NCBI GenBank assembly: GCA_010909165.1
Contig: VJWM01000354.1
Span: 1 to 42,849, forward strand
DNA length: 42,849 nucleotides
Source of the DNA: Anthoceros angustus
Lineage: Eukaryota > Plantae > Anthocerotophyta
Direction: 5' to 3'
In this document: one piece after another, positions 4,376 through 42,849 of the stretch
Position numbering within the stretch: the stretch's first letter is position 1
Layout: each line of letters begins with the position of its first letter
The notes under the pieces: model-generated
The model's database searches: none
Told to the model about the DNA's origin: nothing
The model's input: the letters and a program-made list of their open reading frames with translations, nothing else
Translations under genes and position numbers: made by a program

Positions 4376-7300
4376 ATGCAGGCAGCTGTGCAATCTGGGG
4401 GGCCCGCACCAAGAGCTGTGACAGGGCCAACTTCTTCTCAGCAACTAAAGTCTGGAACTGACATAAATGCAGCTGTAGTGCACTCAGCACCTGGAAAAGG
4501 CAAGAAAAGAGATCGAGCTGATCAGCACCTCGATCCCAGTAAACGTGAGCGCCCTTTGAAGCCAGATGATAATGATTCGACTCTTTTAAAGTATGACCGC
4601 CCTATGAGACCTGAAGATATTGGTAGCATTACGGACAAGGATGGAGGCCTCTCCAACCTTGCTGCAGTTGATCGCCTGGTGCACCTTATGCAGCAGGAGA
4701 GGATGGAGAATGCCAGTAAAGTCAATGATCCAGGTTGCAGACGAAGTATGCTAGCAGGTGTCATTGTGGCCAGTGAACGGGAAGATTGTCTGGAGCGATT
4801 TGTGCAGCAAGGGGGGTTGGCTTTGCTGGATGACTGGCTCCAGGAGGCTCAGAAAGTAGCGAATGGGGACGCCGGGAGCCCAAAAGAAGGGGACAAGGCA
4901 GTGGAGGAGCTCCTGTTAACGCTTCTGCATGCACTTGATAGACTTCCTGTGAATTTGGAGGCATTGAAAACTTGTGTGGTGGGTAAGTCGGTGAATCAGC
5001 TGCGTAGCCATAAGAACTCAGAAATTCAAAAACGGGCTCGAAAGTTGGTGGATGTTTGGAAGAAAAGGGTTGACGCTGAGATGAAGTTGACGGGAGAAGG
5101 GAAGTCTGGATCGAGTCATGAGATAGCCTGGTCTTGCAAGCAATCCTCAGCAGACCTTGTGCATGTGCATCTTCTGAAAAGTGGTGTGCCTCCTGAAGTT
5201 GCTGTAAAGAGTGGTTCAGGGCCTTTTCCAAAGGTCAACTCAAATAGCTGCTGTCCTGGAGAGACAAGGTCCATTGCTGGCGCCCCTAAAACCTCAGAAT
5301 CTCTTTCCCCTAACTCTGCAGGTCTGAAGGATGGTTGCAGTAAATTTTCAGTCAACAACGTAAACACTGACATACCTGCATCTCTGCCCAAGGAAGAGAA
5401 AGGCAGCGACGCTACTCATGCTCAGAACAATGGGCAAGTATGGTCAAGTGGAGTGGGAAAAGGGTGTACCTGGAAGGAAAATGTAAAGAGCTGTACACCT
5501 TCAGGGCTCAATCCCAAGCTGCTCCCATCTGGACTCTGGCCTAATAGTGTATCTGGGAAAGCATTTCCAGGCATTGTATCAGGGGTTCAGAAGGAGATGG
5601 TTGCTGGAAGGCCTCTGGTCTGGAGTAGGAATGCTGCTAATGACAAGGCATGTGCTACAGGACCCACCATTGAGAAGAGCACAATTGATGTTTCCCGTGC
5701 AGAAAGTTCTAGTGCTCAAGGGAGGTTAATGGGAAAAATTCCAAGTCATGGAAAGAGTCCCGCACGAGTGAGTGGAGGAACAGAAGCCCCTGCAGTTCAA
5801 TCTGGGAGGGGAAATTTAGCTACCGTTACTGACAGACAAACTGGGAGCTCCTCGCTATCCATGAATTTGGCGGATGTCACTGAAGCTAAAGGAAGGCCAC
5901 AGAACAATGGAAGGATAATTGGCATATTGGAGGCATCTGACGAGACAAAAGCTGCACCATTTGGCGGAGAAGACGATAAGAAGGTTTCTGGTGCAAGGAT
6001 TCCAAGCAGTGATTCTGAGAATTTGGTCAGTGAAGGTACCAACCATGGGAGGTCTGCTGATGAGATGCGAAAAGTTGAGTCAGCTCCACCCAGTAAAGCT
6101 GACTGCAGCACAGAGGACTGTTTATCGAAGGGAGAGAGGGAGATTGAGGGAGGGAAGGGTCTGCAGCCTCATTTGGTCGTTGTTGAGGAAGATGTTGCTG
6201 CTGATGTGGGCGGCATAAGTCTGCTGGCAAATGTCCTAGCTGTTGAGGTGTCAAAGGGGACTAGTGTAGCTAGGCCTGTTGAAGGTGTACTAGATAGAGC
6301 TGTGAGGTGCTCATTTGACATGGCGACTCAAAGGGATGAGTGCAAAAGGGAAGGCTGCAGCATGGATAAAGTTCGGGGAATTGCTTGTGACAGTATACCA
6401 AGTCCACCAACTGTGGCCTCTGAGGTTGGTCGGGCCATTGGAGTGGATGTCTCTTCACTTAAAAGTACACGGGAGAGGGTGGGCATGGACACGGAGAGCA
6501 AGGGAGGTAACAGTCCACCTGGCACTGGTGTCTCAAATGAGACTGACACAAAGCAAGAAAGTTTCACACCCAATGTAAATGTAGTAAATGAGATCAACAG
6601 TGATGCACTAGAGAGAAGGCTGCCCCTCCCTGAGGAGGAGCGCGCTGTCACTGGTGCAGTGGGCCCTCTTACTACTTCACAAGATGTAGGGGATGCTTCA
6701 AGGCTTTTCACTGGAGAGGAGGTGCAACTATGTGCACAATCATGTGATGCAGGTCCAGAGAAAGATTCAAATGTAACCACCGATGAAGATATGCACGGAG
6801 TGCTGGGTAACCAGACTGTCTATCCTATTGGAGGGAAGTCTGGCAGGTGGGAAGGTGTCATTGATGATCGAAAGTTGTCCCGGACCCACTTGAAAAGTGG
6901 TAAGCTTTCTGTGGACCTTGCTTGTGTGTTTGCGTAAATTGTATTGACTGCAGCATACCCTCAGTGAACTATGGCGTCAAGGAAACAGCTGTAACGATTC
7001 TGGAAATCTGTGTGCAGGGAAGAGAGATCTGGAAGCAGGGGGGGGCCTCATGTCCAGTGAGAACTGTCTTTTCGAGGATGACGCACTTCAGGTGGCACAG
7101 CAAGTGGGAAAAGAAGCTGAGCAGGATATCAAACGTTTTGGAAAGCGAGGAAGTAGTTCATGTGCTGATATGGACAACATGGGTAATGATAAAGTGGAAC
7201 ACACTGCTCCAGTTGCTGGCACTGCTGCTGTGGGCCTCCCGGAGTCCAGTTTGGAGCACCGATGGCAATCACTTGTTGAATGTGAGTTCTCCGATCAGTA

Positions 7301-9188
7301 TAAGGATGTTGGTGGAGCTCACCAGCAACTCTCTGCACGGAATGCTGGCTGTTCCGATGATAGTCAAGAGACTGTCACAGAACGGACTGAAGATGTTGCT
7401 GATAGAGCCACAGGTCTCGGTGCAGGGGAGGAAGTGGATCAGTTGGGCTTCTGCACTGATCAAGAAAGAACAGTCGTTGCCACAGCTGTAGAGTCTGAGT
7501 CTTTGCCAGTTGGAGGTGGCATAGAGAAGAACCTTGCAAATTCAGGTGGTAGGCCTGTTAGCAGGTCGTCGTCAGATCAGGCTGGCCATCTTCAGAATCT
7601 TCCTCAGAACGTTCCTCATAATGTTCTCAAATCTGGTCAACGAAATTCTCAAGCTGGGGAACCCACAACACCTGAGCAAGCAACTGAAGTTCTTGGCCCC
7701 AGCGATGGCCCTGTCGGAGGCAGCGATGCATCTGAAAGGCCTGATTTTGATCTCAATGAAGGCATACCAGTTGAAGAACATCCTCAGGATGATGCTTCAA
7801 CAAACTTACCATCTGTAGATTCTCCTGTTGTAGTGATCAATCATCCAGCAGCTGCAAACTTGACGACTCCTATTGCTGTAGTGGCAGCAACAAAGGGCCC
7901 TTTTATCCCACCGGCTAGTCCCATGCGCCTGAAGGGTGAGCTTGGATGGAAGGGTTCTGCAGCTACCAGTGCTTTTCGTCCTGCGGAACCCAGGCGGACG
8001 CCTGAAAGACAAGCGGGGGCTTTGGACACTGTCCTGAGCTCAGGGTTGAGGCGGATGAGGCCACCTCTGGATATTGACCTGAATGTGGTGGATGAAAGAG
8101 GCTTGGATGATGGGTCTGGAATGCCAAGCCCGCAGTTTCAGATGTCTGACATTGTCTTGGGGCTTCAGGAATTATCATGCCCAACGCGCTCAAAATTATG
8201 CCCAGATTCTACGGAATTTATGAAGGATTCTCCAGTGATTCACACCCTGGTGAAGCTGGATTTAGATCTCAATAGAGCTGATGAAAGTGAGGAAAGTGGC
8301 ACCTTATTGATGTCAGATTGGAGAGTTCCAAAGACGGTTGGGTCTTCCACTGAAACTAAAACCTTCAGGCCAGTGTTGCGAGATTTTGACTTGAATGATG
8401 GTCCTGCTTCTGAAGACAATTTGGTTGATGATACTGTTGGTCTGTCTGGAAGCTCTGCAGGCCTGATAAATCCCCCGATGTCACTGATAGCCAACCTGAG
8501 GTTGGGCAATGAGGTGACGCATGCACCCTCTTGGGTTGTTCCAAACAGCTCATTCTCTGCTGTTGCTCTGCCTTCTGTCTCTATGAATCGTGCTGAACCA
8601 TCCTATTCAGTTGCTGGTGCTGCTGCACAGTATTTAGGTGCTAGACCTAGTTCTGTCTCATTTGCTAGCGAAAGATATAGAACAGTAAACAATCCTCCAG
8701 GAGCAGTGTCCATTGCCTATCCCACAAACCCACCTCCTGCTTTCTGTGCTTATTCTTTCGGATCCAGTTTTCCTTTCGGCTCCTCAGCAGGATTTGCAAC
8801 TAGCTCCTCACCATATCTGGAGTCAGCTGGATCCACGTCACTGACATCGTCTGTGTCCTCTCACACATTGACTTCAGGGGTTCTAAATGCAGCATATTTG
8901 AGACCCCCTTATGTTCTGGGTATTGCTGAGGTGCCTGCACAGGATGTGGCCATGGCCAATACTTGGACGAGGCCAAGTCTAGATCTCAATGCTGGTCCAG
9001 AGTCAGTTGAAACTGAGATCAGGGAAGATGTTCTGGCTGGGAGACAGCCGGGCCTTGCAAGCGGGCAAGTCCTATACAATGACCAGTTGAAGGGTCCCCA
9101 CACAGGTACTCTGAAGAGAAAGGAGCCAGAAGGTGGTTGGGGGGACTCATTCAAAAGTGGATTCCCTCACTCAGCATGGCGCCACTAG
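4376..9188 (+). CDS. SUO: SUO-like TFIIS N-terminal (helical bundle) domain protein; exons 4376-6899 and 7018-9188 (1564 aa from Met 4376)
   Basis: TFIIS-N region (LDDWLQEA..LLHALDRLPVNLEALKTCVVGKSVNQLRSHKNSEIQKRARKLVDVWKKRVDAEM), DDALQVAQQV, GWKGSAATSAFRPAEPR, five DLN/EAR-like motifs and C-terminal LKRKEPEGGW match the Arabidopsis At3g48050 (SUO) family. A GT-AG intron 6900-7017 (GTAAGC...TGTGCAG, phase 1) joins the two long ORFs in frame. Confidence 0.88.
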
Positions 9189-14156: not shown

Positions 14157-17063
14157 ATGTCAGGATCAACTAATCCTGACTCAGGATCAGACCGGTTGCA
14201 AGATAAGGACCGGCTGACTCCGAGTAATTTCGATGCCTGGAGCTTTAGGGTGCGCTGCATCCTTGAGGAGAAATTGCTGATGGAAGTGGTTGATGGCACT
14301 GTTCCCAAAAAGGTGAGATTACGCGCCACATTCCGTTGGTTGAGGTGACTGGTCAGCCATCTGGAACCATGACACCGAACAGGGTAAATCAAGTACCCTG
14401 GACAAGAAAAGATGAGCTTGAGTGGACATACAAAGACAAGAAGGCACGTACCATCTTGGTGGCCTCTGTCTCGCAGGAAATGATTCCTCATATAAAGTTG
14501 ACGCAGTCTTCAAACGAGGTCTGGTCACTGTTATCAGAAACCTATGAGTCGAAGGATATGATAAGCGAGGCTGCAACCTACAATTCGGACACTTATGAGG
14601 CGATTGTTGAGAGTCATGTTGCTAAGTTTAGGGCTGCTAGAGCCAAACTAGCTTCTTGCGGAGTGATCACAGCTGAGTCTAGAGCAGCAGTACAATTATT
14701 GCTCTCTCTCCCACCAAGCTTTGAACAGTTCAGTGCTAGCATCCAAACATCAGCAGTTGTCACCCCTGCTACAGCAACTACTCCTTCCTCATCTAATCTT
14801 ACTGTTCAGAAGGTCGTAGCAGCCCTTTTACAGTTTGAAGCAAACAGAAAGCATATGAAAGGAGGTAGTTCTTACCGTCACATAGGCAGTGATCGCCCTC
14901 TTCTCCGAGAGGTAGAGGGCGTGGGGAGAGGTAGAGGCGGAGGGGCTTTGGGAGGTAGAGGTTTCACCTTCTACCTGCTAGTTCACATCCCAATTCCAAT
15001 TCCTCGTCTACCACCAAATCGAAATTGTAACTCTGCGGCAAACTTCGGATAAAAGGCGTCGTAAAGAATCGAGATGAAGGTGCTAAAGGCAAACATCCTG
15101 AGGCACACCTCGAGCCTCCACTCCGGGGCGCTGTTGCGTGCCTTACCTCATCTAGAAAGGGCTCGAGATGGTATCGGGCGGTGGAGCTTGAACCATATGT
15201 GTTCTAGGAGAAAGTCCTTCATTACGTATGAAGCTTTTCCGACATGTCACCAGACAGCTGTTGTGTTAGGTGACAACTCGACAATTCCAATAAAAGGAAC
15301 AGGCACAATACATGTTACCTTATAGGATGGTAGTTTTCTGCTTTTGGAGAATGCTTTACATGTTCCTGCCATTACCAAGAATCTTGTTAGTACAATGGCA
15401 CTTGGGAAAACTAACAATAGAATTACATTCGAAGAAGTGGAGTGTACCATTTATAGGTGGCGACCTTGATCATCATTGCTCGTGGAAACCACGATTGATC
15501 TCTGCTGGATTTTGTCTCGGACTTGCCATCGAGTTTTACGCACACCGCCACCGGCGAATGTTATCAAGCAACCTTCAAATGCCTTTAAGTGGCATTGTAG
15601 ACTTGGACACCCGAATATCAAAGCTATGAGGTGACTGTTGAAGGAGAAAATGGTAACAGGTTTTATTGAGAGTGAGTTACATGATCTTGACTTGTGTGTT
15701 GCCTGTGTCCATGGCAAACAGTTTAAGTCACACTTTGGCAGCGGAAATCCACGTAAAGCTACAGAACTGCTGGATCTGGTTCATACCGATATTTGTGGAC
15801 CAATGTCAGTTACTTCATGGGGAGGAGCTCGGTATTTCATTGTATTTGAAGATGACAGATCCCACTTCACTGTCACTGAGCTCCTTCGTCACAAGAGTGA
15901 GGTGTTCTCGACTTTAAGCGTTATCGGCATATCGCGACAAAGCAGGCTTTAAGCTTAAGTGTATACGTCGGACAATGGGAAGGAGTACCTTTCCAATGCT
16001 TTTCAAAATCTTGTCGGAGAAGGGATTACCGGTTGACAATCCCGTATCATTCTGACATGAATGGGCGTGCCAAACGCCGCCACGAGACTATTCAAGATGC
16101 TGCAAGGTCACTTCTTTATCAAGGGAGGCTGCCAATACGCTCGCGTGTATCCTGTAGCCACTTACTTGCGAGAATAGGTCACCGCTTTTCCTTGCTGTGG
16201 TATCACACCTTTTGAAGCCTGGACAGGAAGCAAACCCGATTTGTCACATCTTAGAGTCTTTGGCGACGCATATTCGCACATTCTCGATCGCCTACGCTAT
16301 AAGTTTTCTTTTAAGTCTAAAAGACACATCTTCATAGGATACACCTGTATTCATGGCTACAAATTGTTCGAACTGTCACAAGGAAGGTGATCCATGCAAG
16401 GGCATTGCGTTTGATGAGCGTCTTGTCTTGTCTGCCTTCACACTCCTTTAGTGACTTTCTCGACGAAGAAACTGTTGAACTTGAGCACTCTGTAGATGCA
16501 GGGGAGGAACCACAAGATATCGTTAGTTTTCCCGACATAGACCCTTCCGATTCAAGATAAGATCCCGCAGCCGCCTTATCGCTAATCCAGACTGCCAACC
16601 CCGCCACCGATGAGGTCATATGGAGATGATCGGCCTCCTTGCTCCCACATGATCGGTCGGATGTTGATGATGATCCGCCTACATCCCGTTACATGATGAG
16701 TCAGTCTGTGGATGACCCTGGAGTATGTTATTCTGCCTCACCAAACCCCCAGGCGCCTACACGACCGAGACCACCGTAAGGGAGAGCCTCCTTGAGTGAA
16801 GATTTCAAGAAAGTACCTCGTCCCCATGGTTACGGCTCGATGAGGTGGTTGTCGACATGGTGAATCTTTCTATCAATCAGTGCTATGAGCCTTCTACCTA
16901 TCTTGAGGCCATTAGCGGACAAGATGCCACACTCGAAAGCTATATACGGAGTATGACTCCCTTATACAAAACAATACGTGGGAGCTCTGTCCTCCGCCTG
17001 TGGGGAGGAAGATAGTTACCTCAAAATGGGTGTTTAAACTCAAATACAAAGCTGATGGAAGCA
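14157..17063 (+). pseudogene. Copia A gag-protease-integrase-RT start (frameshifted)
   Basis: gag DKDRLTPSNFDAWSFRVRCILEEKLLMEVVDG; protease VVLGDNSTIPIKGTGTI; WHCRLGH; integrase LDLVHTDICGPMSVTSWGGARYFIVFEDD; RT start KWVFKLKYKADGS. Confidence 0.9.
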
Positions 17064-27059: not shown

Positions 27060-29900
27060 CACGTTTTGATATTGGCCATCCCATCGGTGATACCACCGTT
27101 CTCGCAGGCTGTATGTAATGAAATCGCTGCTCGTGATGTGTGCGGAATTCTACTGCGGTTGCGAAGAGCATCGACATTTCAATTGGGCAGCGAACTTTTG
27201 AGAAATTGAAGCCGTATTTTGTGAAGAGCTGCGAGAGCGGAACTTGTCTTATTCTTGGTATCATGTGGAAATGGCCTTTCTCAAGGGCTTTCAATGCTAT
27301 GCTGTTGTCTTTCAAGTGTGCATCAGGTCAATGTCATGTCCATGTGACATATGTGCTCCCCAACAAGGTGACGGGCTTGTTCAAGAGTGTAGTGCAACAC
27401 ATGTGTTGTATCGAGGATGTTGTCACGAAATTGCTTGTGTGCGAAGGAGGCAAGCCGGATGGCACAACCTCGCATGTTTGCGGCACTTGTGGCGTGTGGG
27501 TGGGGCAAATTGGCCACATCACGAGTCATCGAATGATAAGCTTCCTCGGTCCGTCCTCGGTGGCGTTTTCAATACCAAGTCGTTGGTTCGACCAAGATGG
27601 GCATGAGAAGAAGCGGATCAAACTTGTTTTCATGGAGACTCATCCGGTGATTTTTGTCATGTACTTGAAAGAAAAATTGAAAGAGTTCATCCGCGATTTT
27701 TGTGCGGTGATGGCAAGGGTTGGAATTTCGTTGCTTGGAGTGGTTCCGTGATGTTGTCGTCTCTGTCATGGACTTGATCGAACTATGCGTTTGGTGTTCA
27801 AAGCGAAATTCAATCTATGCATTGGCATAATGACCGGTTTCGATTTTTGTCTTGGTGTTCTATAGGAGGACGGGTCCAATTGATGCAGGAACCGGCTGCT
27901 AACATCGACAAATACTATCACTTCTACATCGGTGATGATATGGTCCACGATACTTTTTGTAAACGCCTCATGTTGCATTGGCGGTGGATGCGTGATTCAG
28001 GTTTCGTGCCGGGAACATTGGTGTTGGTCGATGGGGCAGCTAGTCAATTTAAAGCATGTAGGCCTTCTTACTTTGTTGCGCACCCTAGCTTGACCGGTGG
28101 TTGCAAGATGCTATGGTCGTTCTTTGGCGTGGCAAAGGCGAACATGACGGAGCAGTGCAATCTTGAAAAGGGCATTGCTGCAGTCCTCTCCGAATGCTCC
28201 TCATGCGCCTCGATGTTGTCACCTACTTAAGAGAACATCTCAGTGCAACAACGTGCATGAAGTGGAGAGCATCGACATTTCAATTGGGCAGCGAACTTTT
28301 GAGAAATTGAAGCCGTATTTTGTGAAGAGCTGCGAGAGCGGAACTTGTCTTATTCTTGGTATCATGTGGAAATGGCCTTTCTCAAGGACGCTTTCAATGC
28401 TATGCGTTGTCTTTCAAGTGTGCATCAGGTCAATGTCATGTCCATGTGACATATGTGCTCCCCAACAAGGTGACGGGCTTGTTCAAGAGTGTAGTGCAAC
28501 ACATGTGTTGTATCGAGGATGTTGTCGAAATTGCTTGTGTGCGAAGGAGGCAAGCTGGATGGCACAACCTCGCATGTTTGCGGCACTTGTGGCGTGGGGT
28601 GGCAAATTGGCCACGAGTCATCGAATGATAAGCTTCCTCGGTCCGTCCTCGGTGGCGCCGTTTTCAATACCAAGTCGTTGGTTCGACCAAGATGGGCATG
28701 AGAAGAAGCGGATCAAACTTGTTTTCATGGAGACTCATCCGGTGATTTTTGTCATGTACTTGAAAGAAAAATTGAAAGAGTTCATCCGCGATTTTTGTGC
28801 GGTGATGGCAAGGGTTGGAATTTCGTTGCTTGGAGTGGTTCCGTGATGTTGTCGTCTCTGTCATGGACTTGATCGAACTATGCGTTTGGTGTTCAAAGCG
28901 AAATTCAATCTATGCATTGGCATAATGACCGGTTTCGATTTTTGTCTTGGTGTTCTATAGGAGGACGGGTCCAATTGATGCAGGAACCGGCTGCTAACAT
29001 CGACAAATACTATCACTTCTACATCGGTGATGATATGGTCCACGATACTTTTTGTAAACGCCTCATGTTGCATTGGCGGTGGATGCGTGATTCAGGTTTC
29101 GTGCCGGGAACATTGGTGTTGGTCGATGGGGCAGCTAGTCAATTTAAAGCATGTAGGCCTTCTTACTTTGTTGCGCACCCTAGCTTGACCGGTGGTTGCA
29201 AGATGCTATGGTCGTTCTTTGGCGTGGCAAAGGCGAACATGACGGAGCAGTGCAATCTTGAAAAGGGCATTGCTGCAGTCCTCTCCGAATGCTCCTCATG
29301 CGCCTCGATGTTGTCACCTACTTAAGAGAACATCTCAGTGCAACAACGTGCATGAAGTGGAGAGCATCATCCATAGGAGCTTCGTGATTGGGAAAACCGA
29401 GGTGAGCAGGAGGAACAAGTTTAATTGTGACCCAATACAGGTCAAAAAATGCATAGCATATATGGTTTCGTTCTGGACCCAACTCAAAAAAATCGCATGT
29501 TGGCATGTACATCTTGTTGTCTTGATCGCATTCTCTATGTGAAGCCCATGCGAGGATCTGGAGACTCGTATCCATTAGGCCACATGGACAACCCACAGGC
29601 GTACTCGGAGAAGAGGCCGGGATCTTAGTGCGGATACCTTCCGCCGTTGCTACTCGGGAGGAACAAGGAGCTTTGGAAACTACCGTTGATGGCCTTGACG
29701 ATGATGCTATGGAGGATGTGTCGGACATGGCGACCTCCTAGAAGTTGGTGATACGTTTGTTGTACGCGGCATCGAGGCGAGGGGCAATTGTTTTACCTTG
29801 TGCGTTGCACACGGTTGAAGCAAACCCTCTGTAACAAGTGGTGCCCTTGGAGCAACTCAACATTCCGAGTGGGAGAAGTGGTTGTCTGTGGTACTACACA
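27060..29900 (+). pseudogene. DDE-type DNA transposase (superfamily not assigned), frameshifted and partly duplicated
   Basis: SIGQRTFEKLKPYFVK, Cys clusters, SEIQSMHWHN, YHFYIGDD.VHD, DGAASQFK, WSFFG..GKGEHDGA.AILKRAL (read across indels). These motifs resemble eukaryotic RNase-H-fold transposases as recalled from TE proteins; no search was run. Confidence 0.7.
27165..29368. repeat. Tandem duplication ~1.1 kb inside the transposase
   Basis: ORFs 27817-28230 and 28912-29325 translate identically. AGAGCATC is present at 27165, 28266 and 29361. Confidence 0.92.
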
Positions 29901-37131: not shown

Positions 37132-37334
37132 TATGCCTTGAGAAAAGTAGAGAGCATTTGGAGCTCTGATACCATGAGAATTTACGGAGAGTAGTTTGGT
37201 GCAACAAAACTTGATACAAAACAATAAATTGAATACAAAATTGTATGTGTATATTGTTTAAATACTAAACTCTGAAACGGTTCACTTAATGAAACCCTAA
37301 GTTCTTTATCCTAATGTTGGCTTTATTTCCAACA

Positions 37335-38690
37335 AAGCATAGCCAAGTACAAGGCTAGGTTAGTAGCCCGTGGTTTTTCACAAGTCCCTGGTTTAGACTA
37401 TCATGACACCTTCTCCCCTGTTGTAAAGGCTCAGTCCCTAAGAGTTCTGTTGGTTACAGGTTCCGCTTTTTCCAAGACATCCACCAAATGGATGTTAAAA
37501 CGGCATTCCTACATGGGAAATTAGAGGAAGAGATCTTCATGCAAACTGAGGATATGAGCTACCGAAGTGAGGATTGGGTGTAAGCTCTTGAAGACCTTAT
37601 ATGGTGAGTCCTCTGCAAAAGTGCATAGATGAATTCTTGATAGGTCCGGCCTTAAAAGTTGCTGTCGACACAACCGTATCTCCCTCAAGAGAAAGGCGGT
37701 TTGTTATTTTGGCACTCTATGTAGATGATTGTATTTTTTGGGAACACACATGGAAGGATTACCCGTGTTAAAGGTCTCATTGCCGGGTCGTTTCGACATG
37801 GTGGACGTTGGAGAGCTTTCCACCGCTTTGAACTTCGCCCAGAGAGACATGCCACAATGAACATTGTCAAGAAAAGTACATCTATGATATGTTGTTCAAG
37901 TACAAACTTACTGAAGCCAAGACAGCTCTCACTCCTCTTGAAGCTGGTTGCAAGTTGTCTGTTCAGCAGTCTCCACAGACTGCCCAAGAGAAGCATGAGA
38001 TGGAGGCTGTGCCATACGCACAAGCAGTGGGGTCACTCATATTTTGCTCAAATCACACTCGACCAGATGTTGCTCTGCCATTTAGCTTGGTGTCCCAATA
38101 CCTGAAGGAGCCAGGCAGAGCCCATTGGTCAGCAACCAAGAGAATTCTGAGGTATCTCAAAGGGACTAGTGGCCATGGAATTCACTACACAAGACGAAGC
38201 GATGGAGAGGAAGACCTTACTCTCATAGGATACTGTGATGCTGACTGGGCAGCGGACCAAGACACGAGAAGGTCAGTTTCCGCCTATGCCTTCTTACTTG
38301 CAGGTGGAGCAGTTACATGGTCGTCGAAGAAACAAACAATCAAGCTTCCTTATCTTCCACCGGGCGTAATATTCCGCCTCGATTCAAGCTGCGAAGGAAG
38401 CAATCTGGCTGCGATGACTCCTAGCGGATATGGGTCAGGAGCAGAAGAGTCCCACAGCTTATCTATTGTGACAACTACCGCCTTGCTTTCTAGCTCTAAC
38501 CAGCTTACCATGCCCGAACTAAGCATATGTGGCGCATCACCACTTTGTGAGGCATGCAGCTGAGACCAAACAGTGAGGTTAGAGTATATTCCAACTGTAA
38601 TGCGTATAGACTTACCAAAGCATTATCACAGATAGAGATTGATGCACGAATGTGGCATCACGACTTTATGCAAGTCGAAAGCTGCTGTCA
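37335..38690 (+). pseudogene. Copia A RT-RNase H (3' part)
   Basis: IAKYKARLVARGFSQVPGLDYHDTFSPVVK, LALYVDD, PYAQAVGSLIF..TRPDVA, KRILRYLKGT, LIGYCDADWAADQDTRRS. Confidence 0.92.
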
Positions 38691-38810: not shown

Positions 38811-39083
38811 GCTCTGATACCATGATGAGAATCAATAGCTCTTAGATAGAAGAGATACAATACAATGAATTGATTAAAGAGTAAAGTACAAGCCTTTATA
38901 TAGGCCAGGTGGTTATCGTGGTTATTACAATATGTTGTTGTAACCACTAAGTTGTTGCAACTAATATAACAACTAACTATCTAGAGCAACTAACTAGGTA
39001 ACTACTAAATGCCCTAGGTCTAAATTAATGTTTAAGTAAAACGGCCCTAATGAATAGTGCCCTAAGCTAGATATATTTCATCA
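38811..39083 (-). mobile_element. LTR (38823-39083) plus PBS of a further element E, inserted in D gag; internal region essentially absent
   Basis: gctctgatacca at 38811-38822 next to a 261-bp AT-rich segment bounded by TGATGA..TCATCA inverted ends. Confidence 0.7.
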
Positions 39084-39701
39084 TCTGGAAGCCTCCAGGA
39101 GGCGCCAAATTTTTACCGATGCGCCTCTTGAACTGTGCCATTCGAGAGACACAATGCTTGAAAGTCAAGTGAAGGGAGGCCGCCAGCTGGACACAAGCTC
39201 AATTTGACAAGGAGTGCCTCGTTAAGTCATTCAAGATAACGAAACTTCCAACATATGTACCAATGTTTCATTATTATGCATGCAAGGAATAAAATTACAT
39301 GACCGTGACTAATGTCATGACATTGGTAGATTGAAAAATATCTACTAGCTGCCGCCAAGCTTCAGCAGCAATAGTAGCACCATCAATATGATGAAGAGTG
39401 ACTTCATCTAGACCCGAGATAAGGATATGCATAGCAAGCTTGTCTTGTTTCAATCAGGAGTCGAGGGCAGGCGAGGGCCCAATGGGCTTGAGGACAGTTC
39501 CATCAACTATGCCAAGTAGATCTCTGGTATTCAAGACAGAATGCATATGTTTGGACCATATTTCGAACTTAGTGTTGTCGAAACGGTCCTTCTCCTTAAA
39601 ATCAGATGTCACATTCATATAATTGATGATGGGAATGGGTGGCACATTTGGGGAGGAGGCCATTGTGATGGAATCAAGCAATAGTTGTTAAATAGAAGTA
39701 G

Positions 39702-40661: not shown

Positions 40662-41527
40662 TTATGAATCTGTTGGTAATCCAGCTATAGGGACCTCAAC
40701 GGCCTGCAGTTTTGAAGAGGGGAAAGCTGTAAAGCGGGCGTCTTTGATTGGCGAGCCACCTTGTGTAGCCTCTATGATAGATCTCTGCTTAGAAGTCTGA
40801 AATTCTGAGAGAAAGGTTGTAGCAGCAGAAATGTCTACCTGCAGCTGTTGATACGAAATGCATTGCTTAGCAGGCTGGCTAGCTGGTATAGTTAAACCAC
40901 AAGAAGTTGCCTCAGGATATGAGGTCTCAAATCTACGTTGATCACATGCTGTGTGTGATGTATAAGAGCTGTGCAGGCTACCAGTTTGTTGTTTAGAAAG
41001 CACAGCAGATACGGGCAAGTGCCAAAAAACCTTGGGGCTTCCGATGCCTGAATCTTTGATAGAACGACCATTTGCCAGATACCACTTCCTCCTCCTTAAG
41101 CTAGTAAATAATCGATCATGCTTAGGTGACCTCTTTGTAGATGACAATTTTGAGGAGTGAGTTGGTGTGGCAGGAGTATATCGAGGAGAAACAGGGTGAT
41201 GCCGGAAAGATGATAATTGGTGCTGGCTGCTGGATACATCTCCACAATACCGTTGTAGACTTGAATCCGAACTTCTTGACCAGCGTCCTTTAGGAAGATT
41301 TGACATCCAAAAGTTTGGACAACTACAGGACGAATCAAGAAAGTTGTTCTTCCTTCCATTGTTCGAAGATAAACAGAGAGAGCTTTAGCAATTGTTGTTC
41401 CTAACTTTAGAAGATTTCTAAAGATAGAGCCACGTGGTGATGAACGAGAGGAGTGGTGATGACCACCTCTGTTGTGATCTCTAAGTCTTCTAGCACTAGT
41501 TTTATTCTTTGAGTGTGTTCTTGCCAT
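40662..41527 (-). CDS. Unknown ORF between PBS and gag of D (143-aa frame plus overlapping 214-aa frame, probably one gene with a frameshift)
   Basis: MARTHSKNKTSARRLRDHNR... (41527-41096) overlaps the long open frame 41306-40662. Confidence 0.45.
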
Positions 41528-42321
41528 GTTGTGACTTTAAGTGAAATAAGAACGGAACGAAGTCTTGTGCAAGGAAGAATGATAGCGTGGCAATGAGCCA
41601 TGAAACTTTAATGAATATAAAGGTTAATCATAGAAGAATCCAAATTATTTTATTAGTAAAATATGTTTGGTTGAATATAAAAGAATCTATGAATAAGTAT
41701 AAAATAGTTGCATAAAAAAAATACCAAAGGCATTAGAAAGACGTTGCATATTAGAAGAACATCTAGATTCACATCATACTGCATGATGAACTTAATAATC
41801 AAACTATGCTTTGATACCAAGTTTGGGGTGCTTTGCGGAAGCGTTTGATCAAAGTTTAGTGCTTTACTAATTGATACAACTGATTACAAAAGGTGGGCTT
41901 TAGCCTTTTATACGTGTCAAGAGTTGTACCTCTTGATTACTAGATACCAAAGGGTATGACCATGCTGGGTTAAGCTAAGCCAACCATAACCAACGCGGTT
42001 TGTACTTCTAACTCTTTTCAAGGTTGAAGGATAAGGTTCGGCGGACGTGCGATCCGCTCTGAACCGCGACGAAGGAGATCGTCACGACCAAAAACCAGGG
42101 TAGCAATGAAAAGCACGCGTTCCATACCTGTACTCGGACCCCAGCGATGGGAGGATGTCTGGGCCTTATGCTGGCGCCCTTTCCCACTGCGGTCCAATGA
42201 ACTTTAGGCAAGAAATCCGCCAGAAATGACTATCGCCCTGGTTGAATTACAGGCATGCCCAAACAAAATGCCCGGCGATCTCGCGCTAGATTTTGAAACG
42301 TCAGCCGCATCGGATGAACGG

Positions 42322-42766
42322 CTAGATGTCTTCGCGAACCGGAACGATTTTTCGCCCCATTCCTCGACCAATTGTTCCTGGCGCTTTTCATGCCGCTAAT
42401 CAACTGGCGCTCCTTCATCGACGCGATCCGCAGCGCGATTTCCGGCGTGTGGAAAACCCCAGCCAACGGCAGCCGCCCCATACATGGCAATACGCCATCG
42501 GGTTGGTCAGGATACCGCCAGAGCCTGAAAATTATGGCCGCCCAGAATCAGCTTCAGCAGATAGGGATCGCCCCGCACAGATTGAAGCCCCCACGCAATA
42601 GGCCGCATATTTTTCCGGACGCCGGTCGATGAACAGCGCAACCAAGGTCGGCGCCATACCGATCAGCAGCAACAGAACGGAATGAAGGCCACCAGCGTAA
42701 TCAGCGGCAGCAGGACCCAAACAATCAGGCCCCGCTTCTTCTTCTTTGTTGAACCCGTGTCGCCAT
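42322..42766 (-). CDS. Bacterial-type (alphaproteobacterial, Rhodospirillales-like) conserved hypothetical membrane protein, read across indels
   Basis: KKKKRGLIVWVLLPLI..SVLLLLIGMAPTLVALFIDRRPEKYAAYCVG.FNLCGAIPYLLKL..YGAAAVGW..RQEQLVEEWG. Intronless, with an AAGG upstream of the ATG. The family was recognised from memory, not by a search. Confidence 0.65.
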
Positions 42767-42781
42767 ATCGGCTGCCTTAAG

Positions 42782-42849
42782 TCATAAGGAAACGAAGACC
42801 GCAATGGCGGTCGTGATGCTGACCAGCACACCACCGATCGCGGCGGCCA
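42782..42849 (-). CDS. C-terminal hydrophobic end of an upstream bacterial-type gene (runs off the window)
   Basis: AAAIGGVLVSITTAIAVFVSL*, stop 15 nt before the next ATG (operon-like spacing). Confidence 0.45.
   Translation of the reverse strand, partial: AAAIGGVLVSITTAIAVFVSL

Follow-up and report, generated by a model that had tools for sequence, protein, structure and literature searches.

A Lacibacterium-like bacterial tail beside a putative LTR of a degenerate copia element in an Anthoceros angustus contig, very probably a chimeric join

The genome of the hornwort A. angustus has been reported to contain 19 genes, in 14 families, acquired by horizontal gene transfer (HGT), with transcript support as part of the criteria by which they were selected (PMC7027989). 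Anthoceros cultures are also heavily contaminated with bacteria, and most of the raw data were bacterial (PMC7027989). The genome was obtained from an ONT 1D ligation library assembled with wtdbg, read correction and polishing relied solely on Illumina reads whose k-mer depth was that of the plant, and decontamination was done by MEGABLAST on whole reads and contigs (PMC7027989). Other Anthoceros assemblies have been filtered by whole scaffold (PMC8075897). With a pipeline of the type used for A. angustus, a plant contig would be polished but not a bacterial tail attached to it, and the tail would be too short to be removed. Whole-contig screens (MEGABLAST, blobtools) would leave in place a tail of ca. 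800 nt on a plant contig of 42 kb.

Here we describe a stretch of 42,849 nt of this assembly (GCA_010909165.1, contig VJWM01000354.1, positions 1–42849), referred to below as the window, whose end we infer, from its odd length, to be the end of the contig. The window is a TE-rich plant contig containing pieces of copia gag, RVT_2 and integrase, and an ORF of 853 codons with a Med26/TFIIS domain. Close to its end the composition changes abruptly. GC goes from 0.19–0.43 over 41600–42000 to 0.51–0.62 past 42000, and CpG observed/expected (o/e) from 0.60 (41001–42000) to 1.16 (42001–42849), so that the switch from AT-rich to GC- and CpG-rich DNA reported in the initial annotation of this sequence is borne out by both figures. 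On the plus strand the AT-rich side reads ...CTTTTCA up to 42020 and is followed by AGGTT, both as had been annotated. The sharp break at ca. 42020–42034, between plant retroelement DNA and bacterial DNA, is real. The bacterial tail (42034–42849) has a GC of 0.56. As a whole, the initial observation was partly confirmed and its interpretation is partly supported. The features at this end of the window are the following.

39457–39687, minus strand: weak N-terminal piece of a copia gag, presumably of the degenerate copia-type element called D in the initial annotation (Pfam Retrotran_gag_3 and DUF4219, E ca. 0.002, below the cut-off).
41808–41819, minus strand: primer binding site (PBS)-like 12-mer for initiator tRNA-Met with one mismatch, TGGTATCAAAGC (pattern search).
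41821–42020, minus strand: putative 5' LTR, or inner part of it, of the degenerate element D, directly upstream of the PBS-like site.
42021–42033, no strand assigned: 13 nt that separate the last position of bacterial homology from the proposed LTR edge and contain AGGTT, the target-site duplication (TSD) proposed in the initial annotation.
42034–42849, minus strand: block of Lacibacterium-like (Rhodospirillales) bacterial chromosome; the blastn matches to the two reference sequences (L001 and L012, see below) span exactly these positions, and the block runs off the end of the window.
42034–42125, minus strand: first ca. 29 codons of a small membrane ORF of 43 aa (MERVLFIATLV...RTSAEP), located by tblastn with the L012 version.
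42126–42321, minus strand: bacterial intergenic spacer, partly conserved with L012 and L001 in the alignments.
42322–42766, minus strand: gene for an unnamed membrane protein of 154 aa, with an intact counterpart (P0001) and 12 indel events in the window copy.
42779–42849, minus strand: 3' end (ca. 21 codons) of the gene for a kinase-like membrane protein of 679 aa (tblastn).

The initial annotation had described the tail as alphaproteobacterial-like, and the search for relatives agrees with this assignment. A word search with the longest frame of the tail retrieved an intact protein of 154 aa from a public read-set assembly (P0001), which resembles the ORF pieces of the tail joined end to end. 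When P0001 was compared with species-representative genomes, the top match was Lacibacterium aquatile KCTC 32017 (89% aa identity), followed by Elstera species at ca. 54%, and a closer match (98%) was found among metagenomes, on the 250-kb JGI contig Ga0209676_1000092 (L012). At the DNA level the tail (42034–42849) is collinear by blastn with L001, the chromosome of L. aquatile KCTC 32017 (NZ_JBHUIP010000013.1; Alphaproteobacteria, Rhodospirillales), at L001:4917–5747 (76% nt identity, E 1e-147), and with L012:2917–3758 (88%, E 0), the nearest DNA reference compared. Off the breaks described below, the 154-aa protein of the tail is 88.5% identical to that of L. aquatile, 96% to that of L012 and 98% to P0001. 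The gene order in both references is 679-aa kinase-like membrane protein, 154-aa membrane protein, 43-aa ORF, Rieske subunit and cytochrome b, and the tail runs from the final ca. 21 codons of the kinase-like gene through the complete gene for the 154-aa protein and the spacer to codon ca. 29 of the 43-aa ORF. Judged by these alignments, the tail is a piece of chromosome from upstream of the bc1 genes of a Lacibacterium-like member of the Rhodospirillales. No match to plasmid DNA was found by blastn in distant mode.

The same data bear on whether the tail could be organellar or plant DNA with no more than a resemblance to bacterial genes, a reading favored only by the general alphaproteobacterial ancestry of mitochondria. 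We give it practically no credence. The 88% nt identity with L012 extends in full collinearity through the spacer, the identity is 76% with L. aquatile, the genes are not mitochondrial, and scans of the whole window gave no tRNAs or Rfam features. Nucleotide identity and collinearity with L001 and L012 thus refute an organellar or plant origin.

As for the genes themselves, residues 657–677 of the 679-aa protein (L012:951–2990) match 42785–42847 with 95% identity by tblastn, and the complete L012 protein gives weak matches to the Pkinase, LanL and MAD6 kinase domains. The 154-aa protein belongs to no family in Pfam or NCBIfam, and in the ESM Atlas it matched only unnamed clusters of Pseudomonadota. 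Its homologues, at 38–54% identity, are found in Elstera and several alphaproteobacterial MAGs, and in Lacibacterium its gene (L012:3001–3465 and L001:5001–5462) keeps its position between the kinase-like gene and the 43-aa ORF. It is an unnamed conserved bacterial family. The broken ORF pieces of the tail had no Pfam match above threshold, and a sub-threshold match to a holin was taken as chance.

The tail had initially been read as a set of ORFs on the same strand. Three genes do lie on one strand; the frame containing LVEEWG belongs to the 154-aa gene, and the ATG at 42125 (MERVLFIATLV...) turned out to be the genuine start of the 43-aa ORF, truncated in the window. What did not stand was the integrity of the ORFs, which are broken by ca. 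15 small indels. Along the tail, GC at third codon positions shifts between the three minus-strand frames every 50–100 nt, which suggests one coding strand broken by frameshifts. In total there are 13 deletions and two insertions, of 1–4 nt each, in ca. 600 coding nt (ca. 2.5 events per 100 coding nt), about half of them in homopolymers or in AAG/GGG runs. Twelve fall in the 154-aa gene (nearly all of them deletions of 1–2 nt), which measures 445 nt in the window vs. 465 nt in its relatives. One is a 1-nt deletion in the 679-aa gene, located in a T run at 42787 and leading to a premature stop, and the remaining two are 1-nt insertions in the small ORF, at 42094 and 42053. The 13 indels lying within the 154-aa and 43-aa ORFs are absent from L001, L012 and all the homologous proteins (six proteins of the P0001 cluster for the former and five versions of the latter), and can be considered specific of the window because all the relatives compared keep the frame. 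For the two others, one at the end of the 679-aa gene and one close to the stop codon of the 154-aa gene, the comparison was with the DNA of L012 and L001 only.

In a global alignment of the 154-codon gene with L012 we counted 36 substitutions, distributed 6/0/30 over codon positions 1, 2 and 3 (chi-square vs. an even spread ca. 42, 2 d.f., p ca. 1e-9). With the breaks read as X, 136 of 139 codons are equal to those of P0001, and two of the three that differ adjoin a break. This is the pattern of purifying selection, as in a living bacterium. Decay inside the plant genome is excluded on two grounds: by the time neutral drift had accumulated a dozen indels, many substitutions would be found at all codon positions, and CpG would be depleted as well, yet at the o/e value given above the tail has suffered no CpG loss of the plant type. 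With its deletion-biased, run-associated indels and few substitutions, the tail looks like a long-read-only consensus of contemporary bacterial DNA.

An explanation in terms of HGT would have to invoke a very fresh event, in which ca. 0.8 kb or more of Rhodospirillales DNA integrated into the hornwort nuclear genome, beside a copia element or interrupted by one. The element could have inserted into the bacterial DNA, or the DNA could have integrated next to an already existing LTR. The transfer would have been caught before amelioration, and the noise would be that of a poorly covered contig end. Bacterial HGT genes have indeed been published for hornworts (PMC7027989), and a very new transfer would likewise be near-identical to living bacteria. 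We regard it nevertheless as improbable. The tail displays no amelioration, CpG loss, promoter or intron, and both its ends fall inside genes. Besides, correction should have reached a resident single-copy locus as it did the plant ORFs of the same window, and the ca. 15 indels in ca. 600 coding nt contrast with open plant frames of 853, 712 and 243 codons.

The quality of the plant part can be gauged from those frames (853 and 712 codons at 4376–9188, and a copia RNase H frame of 243 codons at 37832–38560) and from ungapped plant repeat pairs of 84–300 nt with 99–100% identity. None of these frames or repeat pairs could exist at the indel rate of the tail. In the parts of the plant sequence where it can be judged, which do not include 38.6–42.0 kb, the indel rate is at least 10 times below that of the tail. 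When the copia proteins of the window were compared by tblastn with 38.6–41.8 kb, only the short gag N-terminus was matched. The 3.4 kb before the junction thus lack a quality gauge, for which reason the noise could also reflect a poorly supported contig end; taken alone, it is strong evidence, short of decisive. A stop-free, Ser-rich frame of 240 codons (40665–41384, minus strand) is found inside element D, overlapped by another of 146 codons (41099–41536). For the former, neither a homologue (word search) nor a Pfam family was found, and on these grounds it was rejected as a quality gauge near the junction.

Other regions of the plant part deserve mention in their own right. At 4376–9188, on the plus strand, three consecutive overlapping ORFs (853, 189 and 712 aa) are found, the first with the Med26/TFIIS helical-bundle domain, and all three may belong to a single large plant gene interrupted by introns or by two changes of frame. 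The first 1700 nt contain two copies of a purine-rich direct repeat of ca. 840 nt, with GC ca. 0.6 and a strong skew in both GC and AT. Many small indels distinguish the copies, which were missed by the tandem-repeat finder, their period being over 500; the repeat could be a satellite-like plant repeat or a noisy contig-end consensus. Finally, 27165–28953 is a tandem duplication of ca. 1.1 kb with 99–100% identity (repeat families D1, D4 and D5).

The main argument for a transfer had been that the bacterial part begins exactly at the outer edge of the LTR, where a random chimera would rarely break. This exactness did not hold up. The small ORF reads ...RTSAEP-(A/M)LL(E/G)... in all five versions from relatives, including that of the closest strain (P0010, on the same 5091-bp contig as P0001), and P0007–P0010 all continue with ALLE or ALLG past AEP. 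The window matches the small ORF identically up to AEP and then changes to YPSTLKRV. By this comparison, bacterial homology stops at 42034, and the stretch 42021–42033 has no match in L001 or L012. The idea that the join is too precise for a chimera falls because 13 nt remain between the last homologous position and the supposed LTR edge. The most that holds is a break within ca. 13–20 nt of a possible LTR start, a mild coincidence. It is this proximity to a plausible LTR start that a fresh integration retains in its favor, the stronger claim of precision having failed with homology ending at 42034 and not at 42021.

We also searched the junction for a remnant of the ONT ligation adapter and found none, the best local score being 8 vs. 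a background of up to 13.5. An exact 8-mer match to the adapter at the junction was rejected, since its local alignment score lay within the background. A remnant would be expected only in unsplit reads, and the absence of adapter is compatible with ligation chimeras or graph misjoins and does not exclude them.

How close the break is to a genuine LTR end depends on element D, which is itself difficult to delimit. The PBS pattern was matched three times in the window vs. 0.16 expected. The other two sites, at 37163 and 38811, have no mismatch and directly adjoin LTRs that end in CA; in the putative LTR of D, TG is present at 42020–42019 on the minus strand, and the 3' end before the PBS is ...AAACT, not CA. 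The putative LTR has a TATA box, TATAAAAGG, ca. 90 nt before the PBS, likewise in the other two LTRs of the window. Those two start with TGTTGGAA; at 42013, 7 nt inwards, D has AGTTAGAAG, which is similar. The LTR end of D could not be defined from another copy, since a second copy of 41300–42020 was not found in the window (blastn with word size 9, and with word size 7 and relaxed scoring). The outer end of the LTR is defined by the composition break alone, and the LTR may start inside 42020 or may extend past it and have been truncated by the join.

Inwards, the gag piece at 39457–39687 sits 2.1 kb downstream of the PBS-like site and matches the gag N-terminus of a copia at 14196–14315, and the element is interrupted by another LTR at 39251. 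D is a fragment, degenerate and truncated. Its other end, where the second copy of the proposed TSD would be expected, is outside the window. The three initiator-tRNA-Met PBS (37163–37174, 38811–38822 and 41808–41819, all on the minus strand) lie within 4.7 kb, each after an LTR-like stretch, and with a plus-strand copia RT/RNase H fragment (37315–38560) among them they make up a group of truncated copia elements nested in one another. Further copies of the 162-nt LTR at 37173–37334 are found at 17062, 17795 and 18510.

The state of the element is relevant for another way in which a break near an LTR could arise. In ligation libraries the free ends of DNA molecules are joined, and the ends of linear retroelement cDNA are the LTR termini. 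A linear extrachromosomal copia cDNA ligated to a bacterial fragment during library preparation would account for the break close to a possible LTR start. This we consider very improbable, given that D looks inactive (its PBS has a mismatch and no intact gag-pol was recognized) and that its interior is interrupted by the LTR at 39251 and by other copia pieces. Moreover, the contig runs from D into 40 kb of genomic context, which implies that the read came from chromosomal DNA, and 13 nt separate the bacterial DNA from the LTR.

The degenerate and truncated state of D, with no second LTR in the window, also speaks against the integration of bacterial DNA into the plant genome. Such an event requires host DNA on both flanks, and here only one side of the bacterial block is flanked by plant DNA, the other reaching the end of the window at 42849. 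Comparison with the bacterial loci, at DNA and protein level, gave no match in the rest of the window, and Rieske, cytochrome b and the remainder of the small ORF do not appear elsewhere in it. The rest of the interrupted small ORF, which insertion of the element into resident bacterial DNA would have left elsewhere, is not found beyond D within the window. Insertion of D into bacterial DNA already resident in the plant, as proposed in the initial annotation, is unsupported: the failed precision argument, the substitution pattern and the indels are all against it. The latter two favor the fallback that had been offered with that proposal, namely contamination or a misjoin.

The terminal 816 bases are thus very probably, as far as can be told from sequence, an assembly or read chimera with bacterial DNA. 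The tail matches a free-living organism plausible in the sample and carries the error profile of uncorrected long reads. The source would be a freshwater-type, Lacibacterium-like bacterium of the Rhodospirillales living with the sequenced plant culture. The join would date from library preparation or assembly: a long read may have been chimeric, or the assembler may have followed a wrong graph edge at the point where the contig enters a repeat, in this case the LTR. Short reads would have corrected the plant part and not the bacterial part, leaving the tail with the deletion-biased indel noise of long reads. Contigs often end in repeats, and a chimeric tail beside an LTR would be unsurprising.

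A true join would capture a rarely seen event, the entry of raw bacterial DNA into the genome of a land plant. As a feature of the plant genome, the tail is most likely an ordinary artefact and a caution for HGT surveys, before which this contaminant tail, left in the assembly and flagged here, should be trimmed. Substitutions typical of purifying selection together with dense frame-breaking indels, both with respect to living relatives, provide a test for such tails that uses the sequence only. From the analysis, a Rhodospirillales bacterium close to Lacibacterium was also likely associated with the culture that was sequenced.

Compared with the region upstream of bc1 (petA/petB) in L. aquatile (L001) and L012, the tail has the same gene order and orientation and differs in having ca. 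15 frame-breaking indels. It breaks off past codon 29 of the small ORF, and the window lacks the genes for Rieske and cytochrome b that come next in both references. With the published HGT genes of A. angustus (PMC7027989) it shares being bacterial sequence, alphaproteobacterial included, on a hornwort-type contig. In contrast to them, the tail cuts genes, is flanked on one side only, lies at a contig end, and is noisy, unameliorated and near-identical to living bacteria. The likeness is to chimeric contig ends derived from contaminants in long-read plant assemblies, bacterial contamination having been described for Anthoceros cultures (PMC7027989; PMC8075897), with the same short terminal foreign DNA, the same abrupt break and the same long-read indel noise.
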